A model generated the notes under the pieces. That model saw only the letters and a list, made by a program, of their open reading frames with translations. It was not told the origin of the DNA and did no database searches. From Auanema rhodensis (Eukaryota > Animalia > Nematoda): a stretch of DNA of 64,000 bases. Each line of letters starts with the position of its first letter. Position 1 is the first letter of the stretch. This document shows positions 7,401 to 33,100 of this stretch, piece by piece. The stretch covers positions 8,184,001-8,248,000 of the forward strand of contig OZ059899.1 of NCBI GenBank assembly GCA_964057225.1. Reading direction: 5' to 3'. The position numbers and the translations under genes are program-made.

Positions 7401-7883
7401 TAGGATCGAAATCCTTTAACACATGCTGAAAAGTATAACCTGGTCAAATTTGTTTGGGGGGATGATCTGAATACTAAGGAAAATCAGGAATACTTCAAGA
7501 AAGAGCTAAAAGTTGATGGATTAATCTATGATCGGTAAGCTCATGTCAAGCAAAACTGACTCTATTCATTTTTGTATTTTTTTCAGTATTGGAGAAGATG
7601 GGCCTAGACAAAATGTTTTTGTTGTTGAAAAAGAAGAACGATCTGCTTTATTCTCGCATGCCACATCTCCACGGGTCAGTAGAAGAAACAGCTTAAGCGA
7701 AAATGAGGTAATTACTAAAATACTTTTTCATACAATATAAGTACTTATTTACTTTTTCAGGGAGATAATTGTATTGTACGATTATCAAGAAAAGAAAAAG
7801 ATACATCACCACATGACATGGTTCCTTCGCCTCGAAGATCCAATTCACTTTTTCATGGGCCAACCGCAAAGCCATTATTATAA
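4460..7883 (+). CDS. Glycerophosphocholine phosphodiesterase GPCPD1/GDE5-like (CBM20 + GDPD domain), multi-exon
   Basis: ATG directly follows a TTACAG acceptor. Spliced translation gives an N-terminal CBM20 ([23 protein letters not shown]) and GDPD motifs ([77 protein letters not shown]). Stop TAA 7881-7883, AATAAA at 7912. Cannot tell gpcp-1 from gpcp-2. Confidence 0.92.
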
Positions 7884-8038
7884 TTTTTCCTAAATATTTA
7901 CAGTATTTCAAAATAAAACTTAATATTTTCTTGATTACTTATAACTTATACATTTTAAAAGGCAAAATACAATTTTTGTCTCTGGAAGTTAAGTTAAATT
8001 ATATACGTGGTGATGCACTAGCATTCCCTTCTAAATAG

Positions 8039-8052
8039 GTTGTCATGACAAC
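8039..8052. promoter_or_regulatory. X-box (RFX/DAF-19 binding site)
   Basis: Perfect palindrome GTTGTC-AT-GACAAC matching the X-box consensus GTHNYY-AT-RRNAAC, 57 nt upstream of the ATG of a ciliary dynein-2 light chain gene. Confidence 0.9.
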
Positions 8053-8108
8053 TAAAAACGGGGTTGACCTGTGTGCGTCCCTTTGCACCTCCTTACTCTT
8101 GTAGTTTT

Positions 8109-8655
8109 ATGGAAAACGATCGGGACTTTGTACTTCGTCCAGCTCCCCATAACAAGTAAAACATTATTCTTTTCATTAAATTTGATTAATGTTATTTTCT
8201 TTTTATTAAGATTCCGTATAGAGCAGGGAGAATCAATCCTCCAAAAGGTTTTAGAAAATCAACTAGCGGGACAGACTTACGACGACTGTAGCGTAAATGC
8301 TCTTACTGAAAGTGTTGCTGAAGAAATTCGAACCCAACTTAAAGGTATTATATATGTTCAACCTGTTTGAAATTATTTTTAGGGTTACACTTACCAAACT
8401 ATAAATATATCGTACAAGTCACAATAGCAGAACAACGAGGACAAGCAGCTAAGTAAACGACAAATATTGTTTTTTCAAATTATAAAATTTTATCTTAAGC
8501 ATAGTATCACAATGTGTGTGGGATTCAGATTGTGATGTATTAGTTCATCATTTTTATGATAACGTAAGTCTATTATATAATTTGAATTACAATATTCTGA
8601 CACTTAGGGTTCATTGTGGTCGAAAGCTGTGGTTTTTGCAATATTTCATTATTAA
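8109..8655 (+). CDS. xbx-2: Tctex1-domain dynein light chain (TCTEX1D2/DYNLT2B orthologue), 5 exons
   Basis: Spliced protein MENDRDFVLRPAPHNKFR...EEIRTQLKGLHLPNYKYIVQVTIAEQRGQ..QCVWDSDCD...GSLWSKAVVFAIFHY*. Typical Tctex1D2 motifs plus the upstream X-box. Confidence 0.9.
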
Positions 8656-9148
8656 AAATTTCATATAATACAATAAATGTAAAATTATCTCACTATACAA
8701 ACTTTGCAACATATGTATAAATGGATATATTAGTAGCTAAATATATAGAGATTTAGATGAATATCATCACAGGTAGTAAGTCCGTTTCATGAAACAAGTG
8801 TTAAAATAATTGGAAATGTAAGAAAGTTATTAACTGATCGATAAGATTAAATAAAATTGAATAGAATTTTAGTGTTGAGAAAAATGTACGGTTTCATCAA
8901 AGATAAGGTAAATTGAATGGCATGAGATACTATTAACAAAGATAAACGTTTAAGAATCCTTGAGTTAAAGAAGAATCACAAGAATTCTACACATAGATAT
9001 ATATGTAGATACATAACGAATCCCTGTTTGAAAGAATGAGTCATTTATGAAACCAAAGGCAGGATTTGACTGGAATCAAAACGAAATTTACAAAGAGCAT
9101 ATAAATAACATCAACATATGAATTTGAAATTATGTACATAAGAGTAAC

Positions 9149-12100
9149 TTAACAACAATAATCGTTGATAACAGACGATATATCTCGTGAATCCCAACCA
9201 ATCACGGTACCAGAAATTACATGTGACTTCCTAGCAGCAGCTATTAAACTAATAGCTGCTCGATATTCAGATCTAGCTTTCGAGTAATCTTGTTTAAAGT
9301 GAGCGAATAGTAACCTAGCATATGATTCAGGTTATATGTAGAAAACATTAAATAATTACCTCCGAAGAAGATCTGAAAACTTCTCAGAACATTTTTGAAC
9401 TGTATCTCGATCCGTAATACTGGCTTCAACATCAAACAATGCCAGAAGAGACAGAACTGATAAAGCAGTCTCATTTCCTCGAATTTCATCAGAAAGTGAT
9501 ACGAACAGCCTGTCGATGAAATACAAATTAAGCTTTGAACATTATCTATCTGCTTACCTGCTACATTGCAAAAATAAATCATTTCCAAAAGGCCATTCTT
9601 CGGGTGGAGAAACAGTGTTTTCTTTTGGATCACGATCATAAACCCCTCGCAAGGCCAAATACAAAAGCGCATTCTCTTTAAAAAAACATATTAAGTTCTT
9701 CTTTCTAGAAATATAAAAAAAATAAATAAACAAACTTCTAATTAAAGTTATCTGATCCAGCTGACTAAGACACCTAAACGCAGTGAGGCGACTAAGAGCC
9801 CTAACCATGCTTTGCATTCTAGAATATGATAAAGCATGCTCATTCCCATTTCGGAAATTCTCTAATCTAAACAACGATCAATTACTTGAAATATATAACT
9901 AGAAATGACTTACGCCCAAGAATTTGCACAATCTTTCCAGGTGAGATTCACAAACTCGATTTCATTGAGTACTTCTTTATCGGCAGAAGTTAGAACCCAC
10001 ATTGTTGGATCAACTAAACAATGAATAAAAACATGCTATAAATTATTCAACAAACCTGATATAGATTGCATTTGCGTTTCTAACACTGTAGCATTTGGAT
10101 AATATGAATCGGTGTTATAAAGATTTGCATTTTCCATAGCAGTGTTAGGGTCCTACCACAAAAAAAATTTATAAATTTAAAAATTATTTTTTGAAGCACT
10201 TACATAAGTACTTGGATCAACAACTGTAGGCTGACTTGAATTAAGCCATTGTACAGAAGAATCATCAGATGGTAACAAGCCATTTCTCTTAAAATTCATA
10301 ATGAAATAATATAAACAAAACAAAATTTACTTGAAAATCTTCTGCAGTCTCTAGACGAGCTTCTTCTTTATTCTCGCAGGAATTACAACTAGAATTTTGA
10401 TTACCAGCGGCTAGAAGACTTTTAGTAACCTTTAAATTGACAACATTTTAAAAAGGTTTCTTAAGGCTTAAACATTTCACCTCATCTACAATTACAGAAC
10501 CTGGAGAATATCTACCACATATACAAGTACATCTACAGTTTGCTTGCCTCACAGTATTAGTCTCCATCAATTTTAATAAAATCTAAAATAAACCAAGTAA
10601 ATTAAAAACTAAATGCTTTGTTCATACATCTCTAGGAATTGTCACCATATCAGGAGCAGCAATTCCATGTAAAATAGTGGGAGCTTGAGCAGGTATTGGA
10701 GCAGTTAGCATTGGCGTTTGTATACTAGGAGGTAAAACGGGCTAAACATAATTGATTTAAAATAATAGGCACATATTGCAATACCTTGGGTAATGGAGGT
10801 AGCGTAGTTGTTATAGCTGGCGGATTAACAGTCATTTGAGCAACAACTTGTTGAGCAGCGACTTGCTGAGCTACAACCTGTTGTGCTACAACAGCAGCAG
10901 CGAGCTAAGAAAAAAAATAATTTGAGTCTTGATATTTGATTCTTACGTGATGTTGCTGTTGATTAATAACAGCTTGAGCGGCTACTTGAGCCATAATAGA
11001 CGAGTCCACAGGGGGCACCGAGGGAAGAAGTGAAGGTAGGGGCACAGAAACAGAATTAGAAAATACAGGGGCAGTTGTAGAGCTAACAAGTAATTTTCCA
11101 TTCTCAATAGTTGGTGGGATGAACCCATTGCCACTCATTGTCGTCGAAGGATCAACATCCATTGTATGCGCATGAGAAGTTGTCGCACTTACATCGGCTA
11201 CAGAGTTCGCAGCTATTTTAGTAACTTTGAAAAAAATGCTAAACTGAACTAACCTGTTGTAGGAATAGTGTCAAGAAGAGGATGAGAATTACAAGCTTGA
11301 ATGGGTATTGATTGTAAAACCACAGGAACGTCATCATGCCTAAAAACTTTCCAAATAACTTTGACGAAAATACTATAATCTTACATTCTGAATTTCAATT
11401 CTTCATTTTGCATAACATAATCTCGAACAGTTAATATACCATCTTGAGAATTTCCCGTTTCGTCCATTCGACTATCACTAATAGTCCGATCTCTTCTAGG
11501 AGAAGAGCACTAAACATATCATTTTAAAGTCATATAAATCGTATTTTTATTATGAAGCATACGTTTTCATTGCTTTTAGCTAATGCGTCTTGAAGTCTTC
11601 GTTCTCTATTTTCTTCGACTCTCTGTTTTTTTTCTAATCGTGCTTCTTCTGTCATAATCCATTCTTTTTTCATGCCAACCTAAAACTCAAGAGTTGATAC
11701 AATAATTACAATATATTTTACCTCAAAACACTTCGCTAATCGGCATCTTTGGCAAAAACGCCTTGATACAATATTAATTTCACAGTTTTCATTAAATGGA
11801 CATCTTATATCCTTTTCCTATAAATAAAAATTAAAGTAGAAATTAGTTTCAATTCTTATACCTTGTTAGCATTCCTTCTAAAAAATGCTTTGCATGATTC
11901 ACATGTTATTACGTTAAAGTTGTAGCTAAAAGCTTTATCTCCACAAACCCGGCAAATCTAAAATTCTATAACATTATTCATAGAGTTTTAATTTTACCTT
12001 ATTTGCTGTTCTTTTGTCGCCACTTCCGCTCGACGTGGTGTTAGTTCTTTTTCGAGACGAAGGCTTTTCCGAATTACTATCGTATCCTATAAAAGTGATA

Positions 12101-15026: not shown

Positions 15027-18000
15027 TTAAGACTTTTCTGGCATAATCGCGTCCTTCTGCAATTTGGCATTTGATACAGCTTCTTCTGCAGCTGCTATAA
15101 ACTGAGTTAACGACTTCTCATCAATAGGTTGTGGTCCTTCCATGAAAAACACCTGTAAAACAGATGGATTTGTTAACATCTATATTAATTTTAAAGTATT
15201 GTTATTGAAAACTAGCTATGATCACTAATCATGCTTACACTATTAATGATACTTTTTGGTTAATTATTCCTTCAATATATCTTCGTGGTAAAGGCAAATC
15301 AAAAATAGCAAGAAGATTTAAGAACAAAGTAAAGTGCACCCAATTAGACAAGAACCCATATTTCCACATATTTGCAACGTGGCGGTGCTATGATAAGAAT
15401 TGAAGTATTCCTCATTTATTACTTCAAATTCTGAGTTCAAACACCCACATCTCTGCACCCCAGATAGTTTTCAAGATCATAGGTTACAAAATAAGCCTCA
15501 GCTAAGCAATTAACCTCAATAAGATTCAGATGTATACTCAAGTACAGTCATTGGCTGCAATGGGGATCGAACCAAGATTGATAATTTTGGAATCGAGAAC
15601 ATTGCCAATACACCACATTGCACATTCAAACAATAGTAAAATGGCAAACAAATCACCTCGTTGTCTCCTCCGTAAAACCCTTTAAGTAACAAGTACAACT
15701 CTCTGTGTAAGTGAACATAACTCGATTTTGTTCTAAAACGGGTTGTATTATCTGATAACTTCACCAACAGAGATGAATTATCAATTGGTCCTGGAGGTTC
15801 TGAAAACAAAAATTACAAAATAAAAAGTCACTCAACAGATAAAGAACCTGCAACTGGGTCTGTCAAAAATCGTTCCCATGACTGATACCATGATCGACTT
15901 ATTATAACAGGTGGAAGATGCACAATCATTAGAGATTCAGGATTGGAATGCCGCATTTCTTGGATCTAAACATCATTAATTTCAATGTTATCAAACTCAT
16001 TATTTAAAACGAATTATTTACTTCGTCTTCCAGAGCACGGAATTGTTCACTTTGTAATTTCCTTCTTTCACATAAAGAGCGCCATCGCTTATTACAAACA
16101 AGACAATAGTGCAACTTATTCACACGAGGTCCACCTCCAAATCTTAAAGTAAAGTATAACATTTACAATTCGACCACAGACAAGACAGAGATATGTGAAA
16201 TACTTACTCGGAATACAACATATCTGCAAGCTGGGAACTTATCGGTGTGATCAAAGTAGATATATGATCCGCTCGTCGTGGTAATAAATGCCCATGTTGA
16301 CATAAGAAAGAATAGTTAGTAATATGTCCTGGCTTCGAAAAAGTATTGAGCTTCAAAAGCCATTCTGTTGAAATATAACTATGATGACTTATCTAAAACG
16401 ACAGCAAAAATACACAAAAATATCAGCAAAGATTAACCTTAACAGCAGACTCGGGTGATAAGAAGTCCTCTGTTCGTGCCCGAATATACTCAAGCCGAGA
16501 AGGAACTTGACGTTGATAAAAAAGAACATAAGCTTCTTTCGTAAGTACATAAGCAGAATCTAATTTAGTCACGGTAGAATCATCAAACTCGTACCTTCAA
16601 ATTTGAATTTGGGATAATTAATAAAAATTTTCAATGAAACTTACCAATTTCCATCAATCTCGTTTCTGCAGTACGCTAAATAATGGCCACTATCAGCAAC
16701 GCTGCCCTCATGAGTAACAAAACCGCACAAATCATAGACGGCTCCCTCGTTCTCTATGCAAAATTCAGAAATATCTAGGCCAACTAATGGAAAAGCTAAT
16801 TTAGTCGAAACCTAAATTTATGATGTCAAAAAAAGCACATAACAAAACAGAATATACTTTGGCACTCGAATATGAGTCATGTCGAAAGCGCTTAATATGA
16901 ATAGAGAGCACTTCAGGAGCTCTTTTGATTCTACACGTTTTAATTCCGTTCCGAAGTCTATATATAAACAGATTACATGAAGATTATTGAAATATAACGC
17001 ACTTTTTGCATTTTTCGCAAGAATACATATCGTCTCCGACTAAACGATCAGGGCTAAAGAAAGCTTTTAAGCAATCTTCTAATGTTGTATTAGCTGAGAC
17101 GAAAAGGGAAGAGAAGGATCCTAACCATGACCACCATAGGCTCCACTAAGACAATTCAATGATTTCAAGCAGAAAAGGTGTAAGCTTACTGAGTCCTTCT
17201 GTTTTACATTCCCTTCTTCATCGAGATCTTCAGAAAGTCTATCTAGTTGTTCTCTACTCGGTATAGGAAGAGATAAATCCTATAATTGGAATTTATATGC
17301 CGAATATAACTTAAATTGTACTTGGAATGTTTCTGTAGTAGTTGAAACCGTTTGACATGTTAAACATTTTACTCCGCTTTCAATTGTACCATCAAATACA
17401 TCAGTAACAATTGATCTCCAATAGCATGGTTCCTGTTTTTTTTCGGCTGAGTTTTCTTTGAAAATTAAAACTAATTTATAAAAAGTTAAAATAAAACTAA
17501 CCTCTTCCTATTCCCGGTTGCGAACCCTGCCTGGAATCATTAGAAGTCGACGGGCTTTCTCCGTCTGAACTCAACCCGCTATCAGCTGTTTCAAATCTAA
17601 ATGCAATGAGATTTTAAGACATACTTAACGAAATTCCTACTGATCACTATCATTAGAACTAGTTGAACTATGTCTATTTGATCTCTGGGATCCAGAATTG
17701 ATGAATTCTACTTCATAAGAATATACAGGTTGGGATAACTCTCTATAATACTGATGTAAAAAAAAATCTATTTTCTTTGGTTTAACCTATGAATCAACTC
17801 TAACAAACATCTTATCAGTTCTTGAGCGTCCTGTTGATTCCATCCTCGAAATTGTGGAAACATTTCCCTTACTCGCTAAACAACCGCAAACATGATAACA
17901 AATGAATTTAAAAACACACAGTAAGTAATGCTTTAGGAGAGATAGAAGGCTCTCGCTGGGGACTCCACAATCGCTGTATAAGTTGAGCCATTTGGTTACT

Positions 18001-19103
18001 AACAAGAGGTTCTCGTAAAGCGTAAGGTCGAAGATCACCCTATACAATAACATTATGATTAACAAAATTACTAATATCTTACTTTATCCCTGAAGAAATC
18101 AGAAAAAGGGGGGCAGCTCGATAATACTTGAATAGCTGCATTGAAATAGCATGTATTACCAATATTAGTTAAACCAGTGAGGCCTGTATAAACAAAATGT
18201 TAACAAAATTAGTTATTCTCAAAGCACCTTTAGGAAAATCATCTTCAAACGAATCTTCCATTTGTTTTACATATGCTCTACTTTGAGGAGTTGAATACTG
18301 AATGGCTGGTCCTCGTGTTTTATCCTAAAGATTTCAAAGCGATAAAGAAGATGAAAAAGTGAAAGTTACATAGTTAGATATGGCATTTTTCTTTTCTACT
18401 AATGGCATTTCAAAGCTTTGTGAGCATGATTGTTTCGTTTGAGGTGAGTTGGAGGGAGGCCACCGACGTCCTCGTTTTAAAGTTTTTAGAGTCCTTCGAA
18501 GCTAAAGATTTAAACATTTAGTTATCTGAAGCATTATAAATAAAACACGAACCTCAGCTGATAAAGGTGTCACATTATTATCTCTATCAACTTCCACATC
18601 ACAAATATAACAATAAAGTCTATTATTACCACGATGGACAAAAATATCATGACCAGGATTATTCTTAAATTTCAAATAATAAAAAAACTATGATGACTGA
18701 TAAACTCACTTCATGATGTTCATAAACATGAAGTTCTTCCTTCAAGCCACAAAACGAAGACCCACAAGATGGGTACAAGCAACCCCATCGGGATCTAGCT
18801 TCGCCAGGACATAACGCACAGTTTTGCTGAATATATTATATATTGCTAACAAAAAATATTTCCTGATAACCTGTTGCAGGGATATGAAATCTTCACGAGT
18901 AAGAACGTCAAGGGAAGACTTAACATGAAGACAATTAGATTGTCCTGGAGAACTGAAAATAAGAAAAATATTGCAATATTCAGTCAAATTATTACTTACC
19001 TAGAAGGATTACTAGACTCATTGTCCACAGACTCTTCTTCCGTTAAAACGAGAGACGAAGAACTATCAGCTTTCCCAGTTCGTTCCGATTGCTTTCGTCT
19101 CAT
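15027..19103 (-). CDS. usp-33: Ubiquitin-specific protease, USP20/USP33 family (zf-UBP + peptidase C19 + DUSP), multi-exon
   Basis: zf-UBP ([32 protein letters not shown]), Cys box [22 protein letters not shown], His box [25 protein letters not shown], and DUSP motif [10 protein letters not shown]. Ends ...AIMPEKS*. Confidence 0.88.
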
Positions 19104-19319
19104 CTATATATAGAGAACAAATAAATACAAACACATCTATGAAAATGTTCAAATAAGAAATTGGTTAAGAACCAATTACAAAAAAATAAACAAAACAAAA
19201 AGACGGGATCTTGTAATATGTACACGTAAGAAAAGAAACACACGGGTAATTGGAAAACAAACCAATAAGAACAAGTATTTAAAACAATTATGAAAACACC
19301 AAATACAACTAAAAATAAT

Positions 19320-20961
<1,642 letters not shown>

Positions 20962-21545
20962 AATAATTCAACAATAAATGACATACAACTGAAAAATAAA
21001 TTTGACGTTTTTGAAATGAATTTTGAAATATCGATTAGTTTTAATGATGGAGATTTTATTTTTGTTATGTTTTTAGTGAATGAATTACTATATAGATAAT
21101 ATGTGCATAATAAAATCAATTATATTTCAGCTTATTTCAAAATATAATTGGCGTAACTATAGATAATTGCAAAATTATGATTTGAAAAATCGGATAGTTA
21201 GCGAGTGTGTTGTATATGCACACTCCTCGAAATGACCAATGAACAATAAATTGGTCTTGCACCGGCGTTTACCGTGTCATGACATGTCTAACATTTTCAC
21301 ATTTTTGCATTTTTCTTATTTTTCGTGTCATTTTAACATTTTTTCTAATTGTTTGGTTTTTCTTGAAGCTGTTATAGTAATTTTTGATGCCCATCAGTAT
21401 ATTGATTACTTATAATGAGAGGATTTCTTAAAATTTTGACTCCTTGATTTTAGGACTGTTTTTCTATCTTCTAATCTTATATTCGTTGTGACTGTATTTT
21501 ATAAAATGCACTAGTACCTATATTCCTTTTCTTTTTTAGGTAATA
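20962..21545. promoter_or_regulatory. Shared divergent promoter region of cdc-7 and rpl-28
   Basis: 584-nt head-to-head gap with a GC-richer core at about 21200-21290. A pyrimidine tract and TTTTAG acceptor lie just before the rpl-28 ATG. Confidence 0.55.
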
Positions 21546-22187
21546 ATGTCCGCTGATCTTACTTGGCAAATCATCAGAAACAACAGTTGCTTCCTTAGAC
21601 GCCAGAGGGGCATCAACAAGCTTTTCTCCGTCGAGAAGTTCAACCTTAAGGGAAAGAACTCTCCCCGTTACAATGGATTGATCAGCAGAAGAGCCATCGA
21701 CGTTTCTCCAGCTGAGGACGGTAAGGGACTCGTTGTCTCTACCAAGGTTGCCGGTGAGTTTTTTTAAAATTGTTGTTATCATAACTAATTTACGTTTTTA
21801 ATTGCTTTTTCATTTTAGGTAAGGTTAACCAGCCAGCCAAGAACGTTGCTGTTCAGGCTTTCAAGAACCCAGAAACTGCCACCAAGTCTCTTAAGGCTAT
21901 CGCTAAGAACCAAAAGCTTTCCAGCCAATACAGAGTATGTTTTTGTTATCATAACTGCTTGTGCGCAACAGCGAAAAGTTTTGGTCCTAGTTGTAATTTT
22001 CAAATTCTTCCCTTTGGAGTTTCGCTATACTTCCTGTGAAAATAGCTGTTGCGCGCGTGCCGGTTAATGAGTGGTGTGCAAGCTCCGCCCAATGTGTCGA
22101 TTTCAGCTGGCCCAGAGACGTGCCTCTGCCATCATTCGCTCCCAGCGGCCTAAGTCGAAGAAGTATGTTAAGAAGACTGAGGCTTAA
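21546..22187 (+). CDS. rpl-28: 60S ribosomal protein L28 (eL28), 3 exons (21546-21753, 21819-21934, 22107-22187)
   Basis: MSADLTWQIIRNNSCFLRRQRGINKLFSVEKFNLKGKNSPRYNGL...LAQRRASAIIRSQRPKSKKYVKKTEA*. Codon bias typical of highly expressed genes. Confidence 0.96.
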
Positions 22188-22238
22188 TTCAGCTCTGTTA
22201 TTTGTTTTCGAATGAACCTGTTTCTAATATGATGTTCT

Positions 22239-25200
22239 ATGATGTTGTTTATTATAAGTTTAATGTTTACTACTGGTTATGGGTGCAGGGTATCCGTTTC
22301 ATGCGTAAACGGAACTTTGTCCGAACCAGAGCTTTCGACTGCATTCGCTAGTGAGATATGCTCACAGATCTCCTTGACTCCGACTTGTCATGTAGATTCT
22401 CTTAGTCCGTTTCTACTAATCAATCAGAAAAATGTTTACGAGTTGAATTTATCACAATGTAACGCTACTGAAGTTATGTGGCAGTCTGTGATCTCATCAG
22501 GCGTTAACGTGGACTTGAGTAGATGCCCTCTTAGCTGTAGTTGTGTGAATTCGTATATGGCTCATTTACCTTCTCATCATATACGGCTCAAGCTTCCTAT
22601 GTCATATTCTTGTGGATCTGAGCACGAGAAATGTGCTCAAGGACAAGTGTTGCCGCGAAATGAAATTCTCAATATTGAGATAGGAACGCCACTAGAAATA
22701 AAATTCACTATTGATGAAGGGATTGTCTATCCCGAATTGATAAATAAGAACAGGTGAGTAGTAAGTGCAATTTCCTTTTTAAGTCAAATGTTTAGTATCT
22801 TAGTTCTTTTGCAAGTTGCTTCTAATATATTAATCATGAGCAAAAGTCACATACGGCCCTATAATACACTTATGTGAGAAAAACTATATGAATTTCTAAT
22901 TCTTCAGACAGTATTTTATCTTTCCTGAAATGGAAAGACATAACGGAACAGAGGTTGTGACACCTCGAGAAATTCGTCTTAATATAGAGTCGGCGACAGA
23001 GGACTTGATTGGTCATGTGAAATTCATTTGTTGGCACTGCGGACACCCTATAAGCAGTTCTGTTGAGGTGAGAAGCCTTTAATAGGATTTTTCTTTGAGA
23101 GAGCGAGAACTAGACTGAATTTATAACACCTGCTATTTGAGTTTTGAGCTACATGGCGTTTCTTTTTCGCTTATATGTGAATTTGATTCTAGTTTTGAGT
23201 TTATACTTTTAACTCTCATATTTGCAATAATTACATTCAAGACGGCATTGTCATTGTTAACTCACAAAAATTACCAAAGAAATTAAAAATTTTATCTCTG
23301 AAATCCGTGGCTTATGGTAGTATTCAATACAGGGCATTCATTCTTAACAAAAATTCAAATAAAAACAAACAATTTGTTTTACGAAAAATATATTCCTCAT
23401 TTGTTCTTTACTGTTTCTTCGATGTTTCTTCTTTATACACATATATATATAAATAATTTCAATAAAATGCTCAATTCATGAAGATTTTTCTATTAGGGCC
23501 TCTAGTTCTCGGATGTGAGCCCTTCCTTTCCCACAAGTTCCCTGTTTCTTTCTTTCACGCGTCTTTCCATCTTTATCTCTCTTGACGTCGGATTATCTTT
23601 CTTCATATATACTTCTTAAGGATCGGACGTGAGATGTTTCTTGAATTCCAATGCTCCCTGATCTCTCGTTAGAACTTTCAAACATATAGCTAATGTTCTC
23701 GATGCTATTAGGCCATAGAAATATTTTGCTCTATACATATATATGTTTGTCCACTATTATGAAATTATAAAAAATGATATATGATGTGAGCGTAACTTTT
23801 CATAATTTTAATTTCAATTTATTCACATTTATGTGACGGTCTATAATTCTGAATTGAAACAAAATTTATTAGCTAAATGTTCATGCCTAGCAGTGTTGGG
23901 TAGTTCCTGTATTAGTTAGCGAGCAAGGTTTCAATGTTCCTTCTAATCTACTTGAAGCACAATTGACGAGCACTCCTAAAGAAAGGCAATGGTTCTCATG
24001 TCCTTCCATCAATTTTCTTAATCTTCTATTTCGTTACAAGTGAAGGAGAAAGAAAGAGAGATGAAAGACGAATGAGAGAGCAGCCGGCAAGTAAAGTAAG
24101 AAAAATTGGTTCATCATCATTTTGTCTTGCGTAAATAATTAAAAAAAACAAAATTAAAATAAGATTCTTCAATTTTATATTTTACGTCATTCTACAAGGT
24201 TTCGACCAGTGCTTCTTCAGCTTCACTTGCCAGCTTATCCAATTGCTATAATTCGTTCTCAATATGATTCTCAATTTTACTACGTCACAAGTTATGAAGG
24301 GTTGAAATAAAAGCCCAAATTAGAAACCACACAAGGCTGATCTCTACTTATTTTTAAAAGATTTGCTCAAAGAAAAGGAGCAGCAGACCTTTCCGTATTA
24401 GCAAAACAGCAACAAAAGTATTTTGAACACAATTTCTAGCACATAGTTTATCTTGATCTCATGGGCTGCCTATATTTTGATTAGTCCATGTATGGATATG
24501 TGAGCGTATGTAGCAGAGCCCCTGCTATCGATTGTGCTGCTTGCCCGTCTAAAAGAAAAAAGAAAAAAGATGACGAAAAGTAGAGGAGGTGGAGGTACGG
24601 AAGGGAGGTAAGAGGGACTGAGAGAGGGAAAGCACGCAGATAGGCGAGAATTGCCAACAAAATGAGAGATGAGGAAGTAGCAGTGATGGGAGAAGATGAA
24701 AGGAAGAAAATTTTGGAATGTGCGTGTAGAGAAGACGTATGTCATTAGGAGTAACGCTATTTCGTGACTACTAATAAGGGTGCAGGTCATAATAGCTGAA
24801 ATTAGAAAGTGTGCCCGAGCTGCCTTGTCTTTTCCGGTTCTTCCTAAAAAGGACGGCTCTGTCCTGAATCGGCTTGTTTCAAGTTCTAATTTCTATAAAT
24901 GTACACCATATGGGGCTTATGAATGCTGTGAGAAATCAAGATAGCAGATAGCCGGAAAGACGTTTTGCTTACGATAGTTTGAGCTCAAATCAAGTGACAT
25001 ATGTATGCATAGAAAATGTTCAAGTTTTGATTAGCTTCATTAGTTTCATCCTCTATCGTATAATTTCCGAAGCAAACTAGTTGAACTCTGTGAGCTAGTG
25101 GGCTCAACCTATTTAAACTCTTTCCAATTTTTTCTCCTGATCCTAGTGGCTCGCTCAAAACTTAATTAGTCGGAATACGTAGTTGGATATATCAGGTGTT

Positions 25201-28200
25201 AATATCTCATCCTATTCATATCCATACAAAAGAAGCATAATAAATTAGTCAGAGAGAGATGTATACATGTGTGATGGAGACTGCGAATGCGACATGCTTC
25301 ATATATTTTATGCGCCGTAGTTCTTCCGCCTACGATTTAATTATTATTCATTAATCAATAAATTTCTTTCCTAGGCTTGCGAGTGCTGTTTCTAATCTCT
25401 TTAGTTGAGTTTGTTACTTATAGCTTGGAACAGAGTTCTTTTTGTCTTGTGTTCTGCGATAGTTTCGTAAACCACATCTATGTTGCTATGATCAAAATAA
25501 GAAGCTTGTGATATAAACTATTGAATAATCCTGATAACTACTTCTATATCGATAGTCTAATGATTTTAAGCCTGGTAGAAAGAAATTAAATGAATAAATC
25601 GAGCCTTGTGCTTTGTCCACACGGGGTTGTTAATCTAGATGATAATCCTGTTGCTGGGCAGCCAATATTAAAGCTTATGAAGTCACCGAATTCAACTTCA
25701 TTGTCTAGCCGTCTAATATTTTCCGTTTTCAAAAAAATTACAAAATTGCTACTTGAAAGTGTTGCGAACAAATCTTGTTAAATGAAATTCTGATTCATAA
25801 CAATAGGGGCTCGAAAAGTTAGTTTGCATGACAACTGCTTTGAAAAGGAGATTATATCACCAAATATAAAATAATAGTTCGTATATGTTGTCCTAAGTTT
25901 GTACCTATGTACACCTAGAACAATGAGCAGTGAACCATAAGCTTTGAATGTAAAAATAGCCAAATAGAAAAGAAATACAGAATACTGTGCCATTAATTAA
26001 CGGAATTGGTTATTCTGTATTGATATTGTTGTGTAATTGTTATGAATGTTTTGTATTATATGGAATGCGTAAATATAGATGTATGTCAAATATAATTTCA
26101 CTAGTTAAAATTATGGATTTAGGCTTTATCTGAGTAATAGATAATTGAAGCTTTTAACTATACTAATTACACGCACCGGATCATATAAATGAAATGTTTC
26201 TGTCAATATAAATATAAAGAGAAATATTTGATGAAGTTGTAGTTGCAATATCAACTTTCATCTGTTTATCGTAGTGATATTATAATATGGTTATTAAATA
26301 TATCATCATATTATTACAAAATATTACTTAAAGATCAATTAAAGTACCTGTTGATTGGGGGTGTATAGCTTGTAGAATTTTGTAATGCAACCACTTCTAA
26401 CAGTTTTACAGCAATGAAATAAAAATTGAAAGCATAGATATATTTCACGTGAGAACGTCGTGACTTGTTTGAAGAATAAATTGGTTAACAATGACAATGT
26501 TGAGAAAATTAGATAAACCACAAGTTGTATCCCCGTTATTATCGTTTATCTTTGTTTCAGATTCATATAGCTAAATCACTTGAAGTTACTATTGTTGACG
26601 ATGAATCTAATAATGATCTCAGCCATCTAGTTGTATCAGGACATCCAATTAATTCTCTATCTCTTACTGTGACGGATAGTACGGGAAAGGTAATTTCATT
26701 ATAAATATATAATAAAAAAAAATCGTAGTGTTGAAATAACAAGAATACATATTTAGTTGCATTTGAATTTATTAATTTTAAATTGTTCAAATTAATTCAT
26801 AATATATATATATACACATATATAATAAAATTATATTTATAGATACATACATATGTATTTATATAAAGCATGAAATACAAATAAAAAAATTTTTGTAGAT
26901 TAAACTTTATTTTATAATAATAAAATATTTTGTAGTTTAACTCTAGTCATGCTTTACCGGTTGCTCTAAAAGACGATTCGCCTTTTAATCTTTTCGGAAC
27001 TTTATTCATTCGTCCTGAAACAGCGTGAGTTTGCCATTTTTAAAACTTTAAACATAAGAAAAATCAATAATTACTTGTTTTTATTTAATTATTTGCAGCC
27101 ACTGGTCTTTTCACAAGCGGGTTTTTTCGATTTATGTTCGATATCCTCTATACACCATAGGTGCAGAGCATGACCAAATCATCAGTTCTGGAAATTTTAC
27201 TTTTAAAATCTGCAACCATATCAACGAAGCACATAATCCAGTGAGTTTGAGTTTGAATTTTGTTCTTATGTAATGTTTTATCTATTCATAATATGTTTTG
27301 TTAAAGGTTGTCTCATTATTTTCGGATAATAATACTGAGACTTTTGTAGAATGTGGAACAGCTTATCATTACTTGAATATATCAAAGGTTTATTTTTTTG
27401 TATTTTTACTTTTTACTTCTTTTCAATTATAATATTTATAGTTTTTTTTTGATGCAACAAAAATTTATTTTCTGATTTAGAATTCTTCGATAATAGAAAA
27501 TTTGAGTAGCAATCAACATGTACATTGGATTATTATACTAATCTGTATTATTATTCTTCTTCCTTTTGTAATCTATCCAAACATGAAGTTTTTGAGATCC
27601 CGGATTATTCGGAACAAGGTTAGTGTTTGATAAACGGTCTATGTGTTGTTACTTATTTTTGAAGGGCTTTAAGTTCCAGATGGCGTCTAGACTATCTCGT
27701 AGGTTACCAGGAGCTCGTAGAACCAGCATATCAACTGAAGAGACAATGCTTCGATTAGGTATATTTCATTTTATATGCATCGATATCCAACAAAGCTGGC
27801 TTGAACATGCAAGAAAAATACATATTTTTCACGAAGTGGAAACATTTTTCTTATTTTGATATAATATGGAAGATATATAAATAAGCTGGCTGCTCAAAAA
27901 TATAGTAATACTGAACTTTATTGACGTGAAAACGGATAATCTTCTTCTTTTCACAACTTTGATGCAAATGTTACAAAAGATACCCAAGAGATATAGTTAC
28001 TTAGGAAAATAATGATTTTGCCAGTTATAATTAGTTCTAAATCGTTTGTTTCGTGTGATATTAAATGAAATTGCATATAGATGATAGACATGTTCAATAA
28101 AACATGAAAAGCTGCTCATATTGCATATGAAATACTCTAAATGTTTTTTTTTCAGAAGAACGAGCTTCGTTGTCATCTTCAGATTATTCAGGACAAATAA

Positions 28201-30142
28201 TTCCTAGTATTAATGGGGCTAGTATACAAATTCATGAACGTATAGGAAAGGTAAACAATTTTTTGAAAAGAAAAAAGAAAATTTTCGTTGTTTCTCATAT
28301 TTAGGGAGCATTTGGGGAAGTTTATTGTGGAACTTGGGACATCAAAGGTGAACGTAGTGTAGCAGTAAAAGCTATTTATCAAGCAGATGAACAAATTGAA
28401 AAAGAAGTAACATATTATATTCACACTTTTTTTTTTCAAAATTTTGTTTTTGATTACCGTTTCGATCAGATTGTTATTTGGTTTAACTTGATATTATTTT
28501 TACCGAAACGTTCAGATTTATATTTTCATGAAGTGTGCGAAGATAACATAACATGAACAGAGGAAAATTATATATTTTCTCCTTTCAAAATGGAATTATT
28601 TCTTAATTAATAAAGTTCTTATTATAGGCTCAAGTTCTATGCAGCTTAGATCATCCCAACATTGTACGATTATATGGCATGACAAGGGATGGTAGTAAAC
28701 TTCTTTTAGTTTTTGAAATGATGAATTTAGGTGAATTTGAATTGAATTTGCATTGTTTATATACATTCATATATAAATTTGTAAATAAATATGTATTAAT
28801 ATAAATTTTTAAGGCGATTTGCGGTCATATTTGAAGAGCCGAGCTCCTCAAGCTACTAATTATTCCCAATTTCCTCCTGCATTAACCTTAGATGAACAAA
28901 AGTTTATATTGCGAGAGGTAATGAGTTTTTTTATTCTACTTTATAATTTTTTTTCTGAAGATTGCCAAAGGTGTTCATTATTTGGGTGCACAGCAAATTG
29001 TGCACCGAGATCTAGCTGCAAGAAACTGTTTAGTTTCCGGAAAATCAGACTTACGATGTACTTCTGCAAGCCAACGGCCGCCGACTACTGTCAAGGTATA
29101 CATCTCAACTAATATTTTTATAATTATAAGCATAATCTCATATATGTTTAGTGATGAGCATAAAATCAGAATTTTAAAACTAATTCTCAAGATTTATTCA
29201 AGCATAAAACTTAGTTAAAAATAGAATTTTGCTTTCGCCAATTTTTGTCAATGATCTTTTGTATTTTATAAAAAAAAATTATATATATAAATTTGTGTAC
29301 ATATTTATCCAACAAGACAAAAATAATAAAATTATTGAAATAGGAAAAATAAAAAATGTTCATCCTTTTGCTATTATTTTAAAATAATTCTAAAAATGAA
29401 AGAATTTTTCATCCATCTTCTTTCGTTACCATGCAAAATATATTCATGTTTTTATTTTTCTATTTTTTGACTACAAACTGTAATGATAGAATGAATGTTT
29501 AATCACAATTTTGAGAATGGTAGCAATATGATATTAATACTTATTTTAGTTTTTTTCATATGCATTTCTTGAATTTGTTCCTTTCAGATTTCGGATTTTG
29601 GCATGTCTAGACGACTGAATTATCAGTCTGAATACTACCAAATGATGAATCAGTCGTTATTACCCGTTCGTTGGCTTCCTCCAGAAGCAATATCACATCA
29701 CAAATTCAGTCATGCTAGTGATATATGGTAGTTTCGAGATATTTGTAGCAAAGAGTTATTTTCAAAATTTTCAAGGGCTCTCGGCGTGACCATGTGGGAA
29801 GTATTCAGTTATGGCGAAGTCCCATTCGATACTTTAACTAACGACGAAGTTGTTTCGTACGCTATGGCTGGTTAGTACAGTGACATAAGATCATGTTTCT
29901 GATATAAAACGCTGTTTTCAGGTATGCGTCCTCCAAAGCCAAATGCTTGTCCTGCGGAAATTTACGAAGTTATGGAGAAATGTTGGGCAATGATTCCCGA
30001 TGAACGTATATCAATTGAAGATATCTTACTACATCCCTCAATATCAGCAATTACTGATATGAAAACTTCAGCTGCTAATCTTTCAACTTATACAGTTGCA
30101 GATAGTTCCTCATCCTCTTCACCTTCTACAGTTAAAGCTTAG
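22239..30142 (+). CDS. trk-1: Trk-family receptor tyrosine kinase, multi-exon with a ~3.5-kb intron
   Basis: Signal peptide MMLFIISLMFTTGYG, LRR-CT-like CPLSCSC, Ig/FN3-like exons, TM WIIILICIIILLPFVIY (about 27527-27580). Kinase motifs GKGAFG, VAVK, HRDLAARN, DFGMSRRLNYQSEYY (YxxxYY loop), LPVRWLPPE and SDIWALGVTMWEVFSYGEVP are all intact. Confidence 0.85.
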
Positions 30143-33100
30143 AAAAGAATAATTAGAAGCAGTTAACACTAGAAAGTGAAGACGTTGTGCCGTTGTCATA
30201 CATAATACTTTTTAAAATTTTTAAATTTGCATTCAAATATCATCATATTACAATCATACAAAATTAATTCAGTTATATTTTCTTATTTTTATTATTTGTT
30301 GGGAAAAAGTTATATTTTTATGTAATTTCAATATGTCATGAACCAATCACATTCCCTTATTCCGTGATCATTATTATATGGGTTTTCATTTGTACAAAAT
30401 TGTATACAATGTGTTATATCAATTCATATAGAAAAGCTTATTTATAAAAATTTTTTAAATTATTTTATTTGAAATATAAAGGCGGCAATGTTCTATTTAA
30501 ATATTAAATATATGAATATAGTATATGTATTAAAGATAGATAGATAATGCTATATACATATATGTATAATATATAGTTATATGTGTATGTTATATTATTT
30601 ATATTATAATTTTACGTAAAACAATATAATTCAATAATAAGTTTATCAAATTTCAGATTATTAATAATATAAAAAAAAAGATATTAATTAACTTACAAAA
30701 AACTTATATATAATATTCTCATTCAACATTCTACATTTTTTCTTTTCTTTACAATAGTTTTAGATTAAATATTTGCTTATTGAACCCATAAAGATCTTCT
30801 ATTTTTACAATGCAAGCATAAAAAGAGCAAAATGATAAGAAATTCTGTGAAACTATTAACTCTTATTAGGTTATTATCAGTAAAAACTTGGATATAATCC
30901 TACATAATCTACGCTGAAGTCATCTTGCGCAATTTCAAGTTTTCAAAATTAAGTAATAATATACTATATATACATGTATATATATATATATATATACAAA
31001 TGTAAGAAATATAATATATATGTATTTAAAAGTTCAAATCGAACAGACGAGTCAGTGTTCGTCTACAAATGTTCTTCAAATCTATTCCTCTATCTTTATT
31101 CATTCTCTTTCTGTCTTCTTTTATATCTTTTTTCTTTTTTCAAATTTATATTCCGGTGGTTTAGTCGAACTCCATCGTGGTCTTCGTGGTCGTCGTTAGT
31201 TGTCCACGGTCAGTTCAGCTTCTCTGTCTGCTCCCTCTGCATACATCATAATGTCTATGAACGAGGCGCGATAGAGAGCTGGCGAGTAGGCTAAGGGCGC
31301 GGGGTGCCATGCGGTACCCGGCTGGGGCCGGCCTGCACCCTCTCTCTTGTTACCCCCATCTAGCCAGTTCATCTGTTGTCATCTCTAACCAGCCGTTCAA
31401 CGTTCCTCGTATGGAACAATCATTTAACTATGTTCAATATCAGCAGTATCAGATAGATTGAAATGTTGGTATATGTTCAATAGTTCAGATAGTTGCATAT
31501 GTAACAATGAAAATCGAAGTGCTACAGATGATTTCTCAGCATTTTCAACATAAGCATTTTCTCAAATCTCATTCTTTATTATATTCTTGTTATTGTTGTG
31601 TAATATAATGATATATAATCATACATACATACATATATAGATAAAGATATATAAATATTGCTAAAACTCAAATATATTTCATCTAAACTCAAGTTCATAC
31701 TAATTAAGTTTATTAAGCTATAGCTATCTAAAAAAATGAAATAACAAGCAAATGTTCTAACGTTAATGATTTCTATCTCAACAATGTTCTTAAGTTCTTT
31801 TCATTTTCATCTGAAGAACTACGGTTATTGATTTCACAGTTTTTCTACCAATTGTTCAATTTTAGACTTAAGCTCCTTGGTTGAAATGAAAGATGACGAG
31901 AGGTCACTTTCGTCCATTTCTGATCTATTTTTTTTCTGCTCTATGTCAATTCTCTTTTAGCGATGCACCATGTTTGTTCTACCAATTTTGAACGTTCGAA
32001 CGCTTCGTGTTCCACCGTTCGGCCTAGTTTAGCGTCTTTCTTCTTTCAAAAATCTTTTCTTTAGCTCACCAATCCTGTCCAAAAATATGTTATAGGCCTA
32101 GTTCTCCCTTTATTTTCGAACACTGTCTACGGCTAATCTTTGACTTGCAGACACAAAAAATTACCTACGAATTTCGAATACCATTACCCTCAGGCGTAAT
32201 TGACATTTCATGGCGATGTGCTCGGCCTTCACCTACTAGTCTGCTAACTTTCACTTATTTCGAACACTCCATGATCTGGATTCCAGATATGGTCATTCAG
32301 GCGTTCTTTTCGAAAAAGAACGCATACAGTTTTGTTTCTTTGTCCCCTCTTTTCTCTCTGACACTTGTACTCTTTGACACACACTCATTCATCATTCGTC
32401 TTTTATTTCACTTCGGTCATCTTTGTATCTTTCTGTACTCTCATTTTCCCCAAATTCGGTACAAGACCCTTTGCTCATCTTTTCACTTTTAGTTCCAGAT
32501 AGACGAACGTTTTCGTTAGCTCCTCCCATTTTTCTTGTGTTCCAGCACTCAGTGTCACCCTCGTACCACTCCAATTCAGTTGGTCCTCCCTTCTCCACTA
32601 CATATTGTTCAAATTTTAAAACACTTTTTCTTTTTACAACAATCTTACTATCATATAATCATTGATTTATATAATATTCTTTAATAAAATATAATTTTGT
32701 TTAAAAAAAAACGAACGCTTAACATGTCGTCTTCATTATAGATATATGTTGTCTTTAGACGGTGACAAGATTCGAAGAACGCATCGTGCCATCCAGTGCT
32801 ACTTGAAACGGGTTCACTGGAAACAAACTCAACCAATAGAATTTTAGTGTTCAAAATTGCTTATCACTTGATACTTCCAAATGTTCAATGACTTTAACGT
32901 GGAACAATAATATAACTTAACTTCACAGTAATTATTCTGTTGGCTTGTATGACATTAATCTTTTCATTGAACATATTTTATTTTGAAATCGCCCAGTCAT
33001 TAATCAGCCATGTCCGCGAACGAACGCTATCCGAGCAGTACGTTCCGAAAACTGATGGTGGTCTCATTACTGACTTCGTCCATTCGAATCAGTTTGTCTT

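Follow-up and report, generated by a model that had tools for sequence, protein, structure and literature searches.

In the nematode Auanema rhodensis, the gene for ribosomal protein eL28 (rpl-28) and a receptor tyrosine kinase gene lie head to tail on the same strand, with only 51 nt between the rpl-28 stop codon and the kinase ATG (22239), and this tight arrangement is shared with three other lineages. The pair is a new form of putative operon without an intercistronic region. The reading tentatively preferred here, which falls a little short of probable, is that rpl-28 and the Trk/ROR-like kinase constitute an old spacer-less unit in which the kinase is expressed through read-through of the rpl-28 poly(A) signal. 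For spacer-less operons it is unsettled whether one precursor yields both mRNAs or whether 3'-end formation competes with downstream expression. The geometry of the rpl-28/kinase pair is unusually clear in this respect, as the kinase ATG follows the signal by 28–36 nt from this species to Pristionchus and splice acceptors are depleted between the two genes.

The rpl-28 and kinase genes

All positions refer to the window, that is, the whole stretch of 64,000 nt that was analysed, and the main features are collected in Table 1. The product of rpl-28 is the ribosomal protein eL28 (Ribosomal_L28e, Pfam PF01778, E=7.5e-18), and its three exons are backed by GT..AG joints at 21752/21818 and 21934/22107 in RNA contigs. 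The gene is very highly expressed, with contig depths in the thousands, and its mRNA carries an SL1 leader: in contigs of runs X1, X3 and X4 the SL1 letters GGTTTAATTACCCAAG, followed by TTTGAG, are joined at 21540, the 5' end of the mRNA, which places the ATG 6 nt further on. Because the upstream Ser/Thr protein kinase gene lies on the opposite strand, rpl-28 is the first gene on its own strand and heads the unit. These two divergent genes have a common promoter region at about 20900–21540. A Ser/Thr protein kinase neighbour is also annotated at the Pristionchus locus L007, and synteny with Pristionchus extends over the whole neighbourhood. Protein searches by word index, using kinase exon 1, rpl-28 exon 1 and an ectodomain alignment, returned no close relatives, and their sole eL28 match (L001) is a distant environmental transcript, uninformative on gene order.

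Table 1. Features of the rpl-28/kinase region, in window positions
Feature	Position	Strand	Basis
Divergent Ser/Thr protein kinase gene, exons	20350..20867	-	ORF pieces; Pfam Pkinase E=3.6e-10 for 20350-20550
rpl-28 SL1 trans-splice acceptor, TTTTTTAG	21532..21539	+	RNA contigs
rpl-28 (eL28) CDS, 134 aa	21546..22187	+	Exons 21546-21753, 21819-21934, 22107-22187; TAA 22185-22187
Ultra-conserved last 45 nt of rpl-28 intron 2, including CCGCCC and the exon 3 acceptor	22062..22106	+	Alignment
TTCAG, candidate SL acceptor, this species only	22188..22192	+	Sequence; PWM; not conserved
rpl-28 3'UTR core: TGTTATTTGTTTT, then AATGAA (22211-22216), then CCTGTTT	22197..22225	+	Sequence
Predicted rpl-28 cleavage zone, adenosines about 18 nt from the signal	22226..22232	+	Inferred from C. 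elegans spacing
Two out-of-frame upstream ATGs (22229 and 22232)	22229..22234	+	Open 40-codon ORF overlapping the kinase start
Receptor tyrosine kinase gene, 16 exons, 775 aa	22239..30142	+	RNA joints, gene model, Pfam, PDB matches

From its sequence, the kinase protein starts with a signal peptide, followed by an ectodomain that is Cys-rich and LRR-cap-like; exon 7 (27481-27618) encodes a transmembrane segment, and the kinase domain is of Trk/ROR-like type. Exon 1 (22239-22753) had been proposed to connect to the kinase exons, and the contigs of four RNA runs establish that it is real and spliced onward, with joints at 22750/22905, 23065/26559, 26687/26934, 27024/27099 and 27240/27307; a loose contig end at 27387 matches the sequence from 27481 on. 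An exon-by-exon Pfam scan placed a tyrosine kinase domain (PF07714, PK_Tyr_Ser-Thr) on exons 13, 14 and 16 and gave no Pfam domain for the ectodomain. The kinase domain is closest to Trk kinases: among PDB structures, the N-lobe of the L005 orthologue best matches TrkC, TrkB and TrkA, and the activation-loop exon matches ROR1 first and TrkA second. The name "Trk-like", given to the gene at the outset, is a fair one for the kinase domain. Orthologue ectodomains are only about 25–30% identical across the four lineages, and a CPLxCxC..W cap-like motif is conserved in them. The AlphaFold model has a mean pLDDT of 61, and its Foldseek matches, all with E >0.1, consist almost entirely of LRR proteins, the TrkA ectodomain among them.

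The N-terminus of the kinase is hydrophobic and signal-peptide-like, and is kept in orthologues. An alternative start at 22263, behind the AG at 22257-22258, was rejected since it would lose the hydrophobic signal peptide kept by all orthologues. A fusion protein of rpl-28 and the kinase is likewise ruled out by a stop in each frame (22185, 22230). An Rfam scan of 19000-26000 gave two snoRNA-like matches and no others, both below threshold and within the long kinase intron; rpl-28 intron 2 and the gap had none.

Signals and spacing in the gap

Reading of the sequence confirmed the positions originally given to the rpl-28 TAA (22185-22187), TTCAG (22188-22192), AATGAA (22211-22216) and the kinase ATG. 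A UUGUU element lies on both sides of the poly(A) signal (TTTGTTTT, AATGAA, CTGTTT). This layout of UUGUU, poly(A) signal and UGUU is typical of nematode ribosomal protein genes and is the same in L004, L005, L002 and L007; a UUGUU-type 3'UTR element has been described for C. elegans ribosomal protein genes (PMC3575287). In C. elegans, AAUGAA is the commonest variant poly(A) signal, and cleavage occurs at an A, at a mean distance of 18 nt from the signal (PMC6886508). With this spacing, rpl-28 cleavage is predicted 7–13 nt before the kinase ATG, with no AG after it, so that the 3'UTR of rpl-28 has to overlap the 5'UTR of the kinase, in line with the original prediction. The same prediction had excluded an intercistronic region of about 100 nt, for which 51 nt from stop to ATG indeed leaves no room. 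Folding of the RNA between 22160 and 22290 yielded no structure beyond shuffled controls (z = +0.58), and a stem-loop spacer element is therefore not supported.

The adjacency of the two genes, whose conservation in related genomes had been proposed at the outset as a check, is kept in three further lineages, namely L004, L005/L009 and Pristionchus (L002/L007), where the head-to-tail pair has a gap of 53, 53 or 64 nt, giving a range of 51–64 nt with this species included. The start of the poly(A) signal lies 28–36 nt from the kinase ATG in all of these tight lineages. Such conservation of tight spacing argues against chance. In Parelaphostrongylus (P. tenuis) the kinase lies about 4 kb from rpl-28 and has its own acceptor; the two genes thus need not be paired, which counts against the read-through model. 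In every tight lineage the kinase ATG falls about 10–18 nt past the expected rpl-28 cleavage site, which implies that the kinase mRNA derives from transcripts left uncut there. The position of the ATG thus supports both the overlap and an either/or relation between the two mRNAs.

The element TTCAG had been put forward as the acceptor for the kinase. It does contain the sole AG within the 51-nt gap, and its PWM score is 5.3 bits, compared with 2.1–12.1 for real acceptors (leave-one-out). Scores this high are reached by about 7% of all AGs in the window, so that one acceptor-like AG in 51 nt is not above chance. The gaps of Pristionchus and L004 contain no AG at all, and in L005 the acceptor is located elsewhere; across the gaps AG is depleted (2 observed vs 9.1 expected, P about 0.001). 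TTCAG therefore cannot be the conserved route of kinase expression. Of the initial model, in which one pre-mRNA gives either rpl-28 or the kinase, the anatomy, overlap and adjacency hold, whereas TTCAG as a conserved acceptor has to be given up.

Three upstream ATGs are found in the gap, two of which (22212 and 22229) had been pointed out before, while the third (22232) had been missed. The first is in the kinase frame and opens 6 codons, with a stop ending at 22232. The out-of-frame ATGs at 22229 and 22232 open 40 and 39 codons, respectively, and both of these frames overlap the kinase start, where ATGs 22239 and 22242 are both in the kinase frame. An equivalent upstream ATG is present at -7 to -13 in every tight lineage. 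Conserved out-of-frame upstream ATGs of this kind would further lower kinase translation. The presence of several upstream ATGs in its leader also counts against the read-through model.

Possible sources of the kinase mRNA

In all four RNA runs, contigs of 2.7–2.9 kb extend unbroken from 22107 (22123 in X4) to 22750 and continue through confirmed GT..AG joints. Since introns are without coverage, the contigs reflect RNA, not DNA. Coverage by 31-mers passes without a break out of rpl-28 exon 3 and into the kinase in 4/4 runs, a pattern that two mRNAs sharing at least 30 nt would equally produce. Contigs built on a 31-mer graph merge overlapping transcripts, and a bridging contig is not equivalent to a single bridging molecule. 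The contigs of the four runs have no loose end between 22188 and 22300, and no SL–kinase junction or poly(A) end was seen in them. The assembler clips short tips of this sort, those with a spliced leader whenever the graph offers a longer path, which makes their absence uninformative. Kinase depth is much lower than that of rpl-28, contig depth being a whole-contig mean that mixes k-mers of both genes.

In X1, a single contig covers rpl-28 exons 2 and 3 together with the gap and the kinase. It agrees with a true bicistronic mRNA, composed of SL1, rpl-28, the gap and the kinase, from which the kinase would be translated by re-initiation or leaky scanning. Such an mRNA needs no acceptor, which fits the lineages without AG. 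This explanation is nevertheless highly improbable, as a two-gene contig does not prove one molecule, eukaryotic ribosomes re-initiate inefficiently once they have translated an ORF of 134 codons, and out-of-frame ATGs lie in between. We know of no precedent for bicistronic expression of this kind among nematode operons.

Contig continuity might instead be low-level read-through noise of the very highly expressed rpl-28, next to an independent kinase gene whose transcription would start only a few bases upstream of 22239, giving a very short leader. The depth of rpl-28 is hundreds of times that of the kinase (contig means), so that 0.1% read-through would bridge 51 nt in the k-mer graph, and the synteny with Pristionchus means that the adjacency could be inherited gene order. 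Two merely close genes are very unlikely, however, given that the 51–64 nt gap and the distance of 28–36 nt from signal to ATG are kept in four lineages despite the low identity of their ectodomains, that a core promoter would have no space outside rpl-28, and that AG depletion and the conserved upstream ATG point to constraint on the gap.

In the preferred read-through model, a kinase mRNA with an ordinary leader would form only from a transcript that passes the rpl-28 poly(A) signal uncut, because no acceptor lies between the expected cleavage place and the ATG. Use of the rpl-28 signal and formation of a kinase mRNA would then be mutually exclusive on any one RNA molecule; the case for overlap and mutual exclusion combines the observed anatomy with inference. 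The most likely source of the kinase mRNA would be rare transcripts that start at the very strong rpl-28 promoter and read through the variant AAUGAA, so that kinase output would amount to a small fraction of that of rpl-28. In this species, its 5' end may correspond to spliced-leader addition at TTCAG (22192/22193), which is the weakest step of the model because that acceptor is missing in relatives.

A stricter version, which we consider unlikely, holds that the rpl-28 poly(A) site is a conserved gate and that the kinase is made only from transcripts escaping it, several lineages having no acceptor between the ORFs. If true, it would constitute a mode of downstream-cistron expression not yet described in nematodes, with an acceptor or start site inside the upstream coding sequence and with translation damped by a conserved overlapping uORF. 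The dosage of a neurotrophin-receptor-like kinase would in that case be tied to the growth-driven transcription of a ribosomal gene.

The strongly conserved end of rpl-28 intron 2 (Table 1) is, from its sequence, a candidate internal promoter or splicing-control element. Its bases are the same as in L005/L009 at 44/45 positions, compared with 61/81 in the adjoining coding exon; Pristionchus retains it in part, whereas P. tenuis, the sole species with a distant kinase, lacks it. An exact search for it in JGI metagenome contigs gave no match. As a promoter, it would make the locus a hybrid unit, with kinase transcription starting in the intron or in exon 3; a start site inside rpl-28 is the case named at the outset as refuting the initial model. 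The kinase leader would still overlap the rpl-28 3' end, and the poly(A) signal would be skipped as too near the start site; the 5' end would be kept as it is or, in this species, trans-spliced at 22106/7 or TTCAG, with no such site in Pristionchus or L004. This possibility, which we regard as somewhat unlikely, draws on the conservation of the element, on its GC box (CCGCCC) and on its ability to account for kinase expression in lineages whose gap has no AG, and it is just as compatible with the contig data. On the other hand, conservation beside a 3' splice site fits control of rpl-28 splicing equally, and in the window a strong stem is predicted to form between the element and the 5' part of the intron. 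In addition, its CCAAT-like part is not conserved in L005, and the link between the element and tight spacing comes from one loose-spaced species. Acting as an internal promoter, the element would make the rpl-28 promoter needless for the kinase, a point against the read-through model.

A further proposal is that an acceptor within rpl-28 has a dual use, the spliced leader being added at 22106/22107 or at the conserved coding AG 22145, so that the kinase leader would consist of rpl-28 exon 3 and the gap, and TTCAG would be incidental. In lineages with an AG-less gap, the sole possible trans-splice site lies upstream of the rpl-28 stop, and the contigs of X2 and X3 start at the exon 2/exon 3 junction and that of X4 within exon 3. 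Dual use is still decidedly unlikely: the exon 3 acceptor is efficiently cis-spliced on the full rpl-28 precursor, AG 22145 scores low (2.1 bits) and owes its conservation to coding sequence, and the leader would contain four upstream ATGs. The contigs have no SL junction there either, a junction of the kind whose tips the assembler clips.

Relation to known operon types

C. elegans SL1-type operons have their trans-splice site immediately next to the poly(A) site (Williams et al. 1999, as reported in PMC1488885 and PMC9258526). The rpl-28/kinase pair resembles them in that both genes are on the same strand without an intercistronic region, the upstream gene carries a poly(A) signal of its own, and the expected outcome is either the upstream or the downstream mRNA from one precursor. 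It differs in the place of the acceptor, as the sole AG (22191-22192) precedes AATGAA, lying 19 nt upstream of the signal and about 35 nt before the predicted cleavage, and is missing in relatives. Mutual exclusion has been argued for spacer-less Ciona operons as well as for C. elegans SL1-type operons (PMC1488885). In Ciona intestinalis, which belongs to a different phylum, operons without intercistronic DNA have abutting cistrons, and mutual exclusion follows the same logic as here (PMC1488885). There, the upstream 3' end and the acceptor AG fall at the same place and canonical signals are frequently missing, whereas in the rpl-28/kinase pair a conserved signal lies downstream of the candidate acceptor.

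In SL2-type operons, SL2 is recruited by a spacer of about 100 nt (PMC1488885). The present pair shares with them the same orientation, an SL1 first gene with a strong promoter and a second gene without obvious promoter space, but it lacks the spacer: 51 nt separate stop and start, at most about 13 nt lie between predicted cleavage and the ATG, and no AG follows 22192.

Since rpl-28 is among the most strongly transcribed genes and the kinase is a low-abundance signalling receptor, competition between 3'-end formation and downstream expression should be measurable and open to genetic test, and the pair would illustrate how a receptor may rely on a housekeeping promoter. In C. elegans hybrid operons, internal promoters drive downstream genes. 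The rpl-28/kinase pair is comparable insofar as a candidate conserved intronic element inside the upstream gene could drive the downstream one, with the difference that this element is situated in the last intron of the upstream gene, not in a spacer.

The rpl-28/kinase gene pair and the gap between its members

The upstream gene of the pair encodes ribosomal protein eL28 (Pfam PF01778, E=7.5e-18 for exon 1). A Ser/Thr kinase gene lies upstream of it on the opposite strand, so that rpl-28 is the first gene on its own strand, behind a divergent promoter region. The downstream gene, whose long ORF in the window is opened by the ATG at 22239, encodes a protein with a hydrophobic N-terminus, a transmembrane segment in exon 7 and a tyrosine kinase domain assigned by Pfam to three exons. 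The closest solved structures to this domain are TrkC, TrkB and TrkA, plus ROR1, which makes the label "Trk-like" fair for the kinase domain. The ectodomain gave no Pfam match; its AlphaFold model, a weak one (mean pLDDT 61), is similar to leucine-rich-repeat proteins, among them the TrkA ectodomain, with no match significant.

Features of the rpl-28/kinase locus (positions within the window)
Feature	Position	Strand	Remark
rpl-28	21546-21753, 21819-21934, 22107-22187	+	134-aa reading frame over three exons
SL1 junction of rpl-28	21540
Segment pairing with intron 2 element	21960-21972		predicted
rpl-28 intron 2 element	22062-22106		last 45 nt of intron
rpl-28 stop	22185-22187		TAA
Proposed acceptor	22188-22192		TTCAG
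Poly(A) signal	22211-22216		AATGAA
Gap ATG	22212		kinase frame, six codons, stop ending at 22232
Gap ATGs	22229, 22232		out of frame, 40 and 39 codons, extending past kinase start
Predicted rpl-28 cleavage	about 22226-22232
Kinase gene	22239-30142	+	gene model, 16 exons, 775 aa
Kinase intron 2	23068-26560		3.5 kb
RNA piece in kinase intron 2	25440-25603		164 nt
C/D snoRNA-like match	24138-24247	+	sub-threshold
C/D snoRNA-like match	24748-24891	-	sub-threshold

The sequence bears out the layout of the original prediction, with the stop codon, TTCAG, AATGAA and kinase ATG at the positions tabulated and a single AG, that of TTCAG, in the 51-nt gap. The two additional ATGs claimed for the gap (22212 and 22229) are both present, but the count was wrong, a third being found at 22232. 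Among the variant poly(A) signals of C. elegans, AAUGAA is the most frequent (11% of genes), and cleavage in that species averages 18 nt from the signal, nearly always at A (PMC6886508). By this spacing, rpl-28 would be cleaved 7-13 nt short of the kinase ATG. Between that predicted site and the ATG there is no acceptor, so that a kinase mRNA with a leader of normal length must begin upstream of that site and be uncleaved there. Only a model with a leader shorter than about 10 nt would thus avoid the proposed overlap between rpl-28 3'UTR and kinase 5'UTR, and the same applies to the either/or relationship between use of the rpl-28 signal and production of kinase mRNA.

Conservation of the gap in relatives

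Kinase exon 1, used in an exhaustive profile search, gave weak but specific matches to relatives; their alignment displays invariant cysteines, a WQ and a CPLxCxC motif. Conserved adjacency of the two genes, which the original prediction had singled out as a check, is found: the pair is tight in L004, the L005 group and Pristionchus, and adjacent at a distance in Parelaphostrongylus tenuis.

Gap between the rpl-28 stop and the kinase ATG in the window and in loci of relatives
Locus	Stop-to-ATG gap	AG in gap	Poly(A) signal
Window	51 nt	1 (TTCAG)	AATGAA
L004	53 nt	0	AATGAA
L005, L006, L009, L010	53 nt	1, inside AATGAAG	AATGAA
Pristionchus L002, L003, L007	64 nt	0	TATAAA or CATAAA
Parelaphostrongylus tenuis L008	~3.96 kb	not applicable	AATAAA

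L007 (assembly GCA_036245785.1) was placed in Pristionchus because its accession prefix occurs in PMC11544036, whose abstract deals with this genus. The window (16800-30200) and L007 (1-24000) have a common neighbourhood of ubiquitin hydrolase (-), Ser/Thr kinase (-), rpl-28 (+) and receptor kinase (+), followed in Pristionchus by a Tctex-1 gene (-). The gene calls of L007 omit rpl-28 and split the receptor kinase into two genes. In P. tenuis (L008, assembly GCA_019055375.1; PMC10940269), the genes are still same-strand neighbours (6041-10001), and an ordinary acceptor stands 4 nt ahead of the kinase ATG. The locus of this large-genome strongylid can serve as a natural comparison for the tight arrangement.

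The internal layout of the gap is also kept. UUGUU-like motifs flank the poly(A) signal on both sides, a layout typical of ribosomal protein 3'UTRs that is on record for the C. elegans genes of this class (PMC3575287). The distance from signal start to kinase ATG is 28, 31, 30, 36 and 36 nt in the tight-gap loci, so that in the relatives cleavage is predicted about 10-18 nt short of the ATG. In each of the tight lineages an out-of-frame ATG with a purine at -3 precedes the kinase start codon by 7-13 nt (window 22229-22234; L004 101; L005 204; L007 10032; L002 548). These upstream ATGs are in better context than the main ATG, and each opens an ORF of 16-42 codons overlapping the kinase start; they may act as a translation brake or form part of a cleavage-site motif.

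AG is depleted in the four independent gaps compared (window 22188-22238 and its equivalents in L004, L005 and L007), with 2 observed where shuffles predict 9.1 (P about 0.001) and the AG frequency of local introns predicts about 12. This suggests that, in an organism that trans-splices, acceptors are selected against in a 3'UTR belonging to a gene with very high expression. Against a matrix built from 18 acceptors of the locus itself, TTCAG scores 5.3 bits, within the leave-one-out range (2.1-12.1) and under its median; some 7% of the AGs in the whole window do equally well. The proposal that TTCAG is the acceptor used for the kinase stands on weaker ground, given its absence in two lineages, the different position of the AG in a third and the general depletion. 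In Pristionchus and L004, expression of the kinase does not rely on a gap acceptor, and the same mechanism may operate in A. rhodensis.

RNA cover and the source of kinase transcripts

The locus is present in four RNA runs of one study (X1-X4), available as assembled contigs. These join SL1 to rpl-28 and contain GT..AG joints for the two rpl-28 introns and for kinase introns 1 to 5. Beyond 27387, a loose contig end corresponds to the exon at 27481, and the 1.4-1.5 kb of contig left over is compatible with another 1212 nt of coding sequence and a 3'UTR. The contigs show the 22239 exon spliced in the direction of the kinase exons, which removes one way in which the original prediction could have failed. 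There is essentially no intron depth, indicating that the signal derives from RNA and not from contaminating DNA.

Each of the four runs has a 2.7-2.9 kb contig that extends unbroken from rpl-28 exon 3 (22107; 22123 in X4) across the gap to 22750, and that of X1 includes 112 nt of exon 2 as well. Since the 31-mer assembler links any two RNAs with 30 nt in common, this continuity means no more than that every 31-mer across the gap has RNA cover. Where a longer path exists, the assembler also removes brief dead ends of the kind that a 22-nt spliced leader or a poly(A) tail would form, so that the lack of such loose ends in 22188-22300 is uninformative either way.

The simplest source of kinase transcripts would be read-through from the rpl-28 promoter past its poly(A) signal, because rpl-28 heads the unit, the signal is a variant, and rpl-28 depth (thousands) far exceeds the kinase averages (tens to hundreds, partly from the rpl-28 segment). 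A promoter inside rpl-28 is a real rival. The intron 2 element is identical to L005/L009 at 44 of 45 positions, versus 61 of 81 in the adjoining coding exon; in Pristionchus it can be recognised in part, and P. tenuis, the only species with a distant kinase, lacks it. Control of rpl-28 splicing would be an equally good explanation of the element. A strong long-range stem that includes it is predicted in the window, and it matched no Rfam family. Further rival accounts are a true bicistronic mRNA, dual cis/trans use of the rpl-28 exon 3 acceptor, and plain proximity with read-through noise.

Among known arrangements, the locus lacks the spacer of standard SL2 operons and, unlike SL1-type operons, has no trans-splice site adjoining the poly(A) site. 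It resembles SL1-type and Ciona operons in being spacer-less and in the mutual exclusion expected, a logic already argued for both (PMC1488885). Conservation over distant rhabditid lineages adds interest, as does the fact that a signalling receptor is paired with a ribosomal protein gene. The interpretation turns on the 5' end of the kinase mRNA, for which the routes named above are all candidates.

Two minor features of the RNA data concern other parts of the locus. A 116-nt contig in X4 (depth ~3500) joins rpl-28 exon 2 (21843-21872) to a complete SL1 and the rpl-28 5' end (21534-21603), and probably represents a chimera of a very abundant mRNA that arose in the library or during assembly. 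Kinase intron 2, unusually long for this gene, contains a piece with low RNA depth in one run (X1) and two C/D snoRNA-like Rfam matches.
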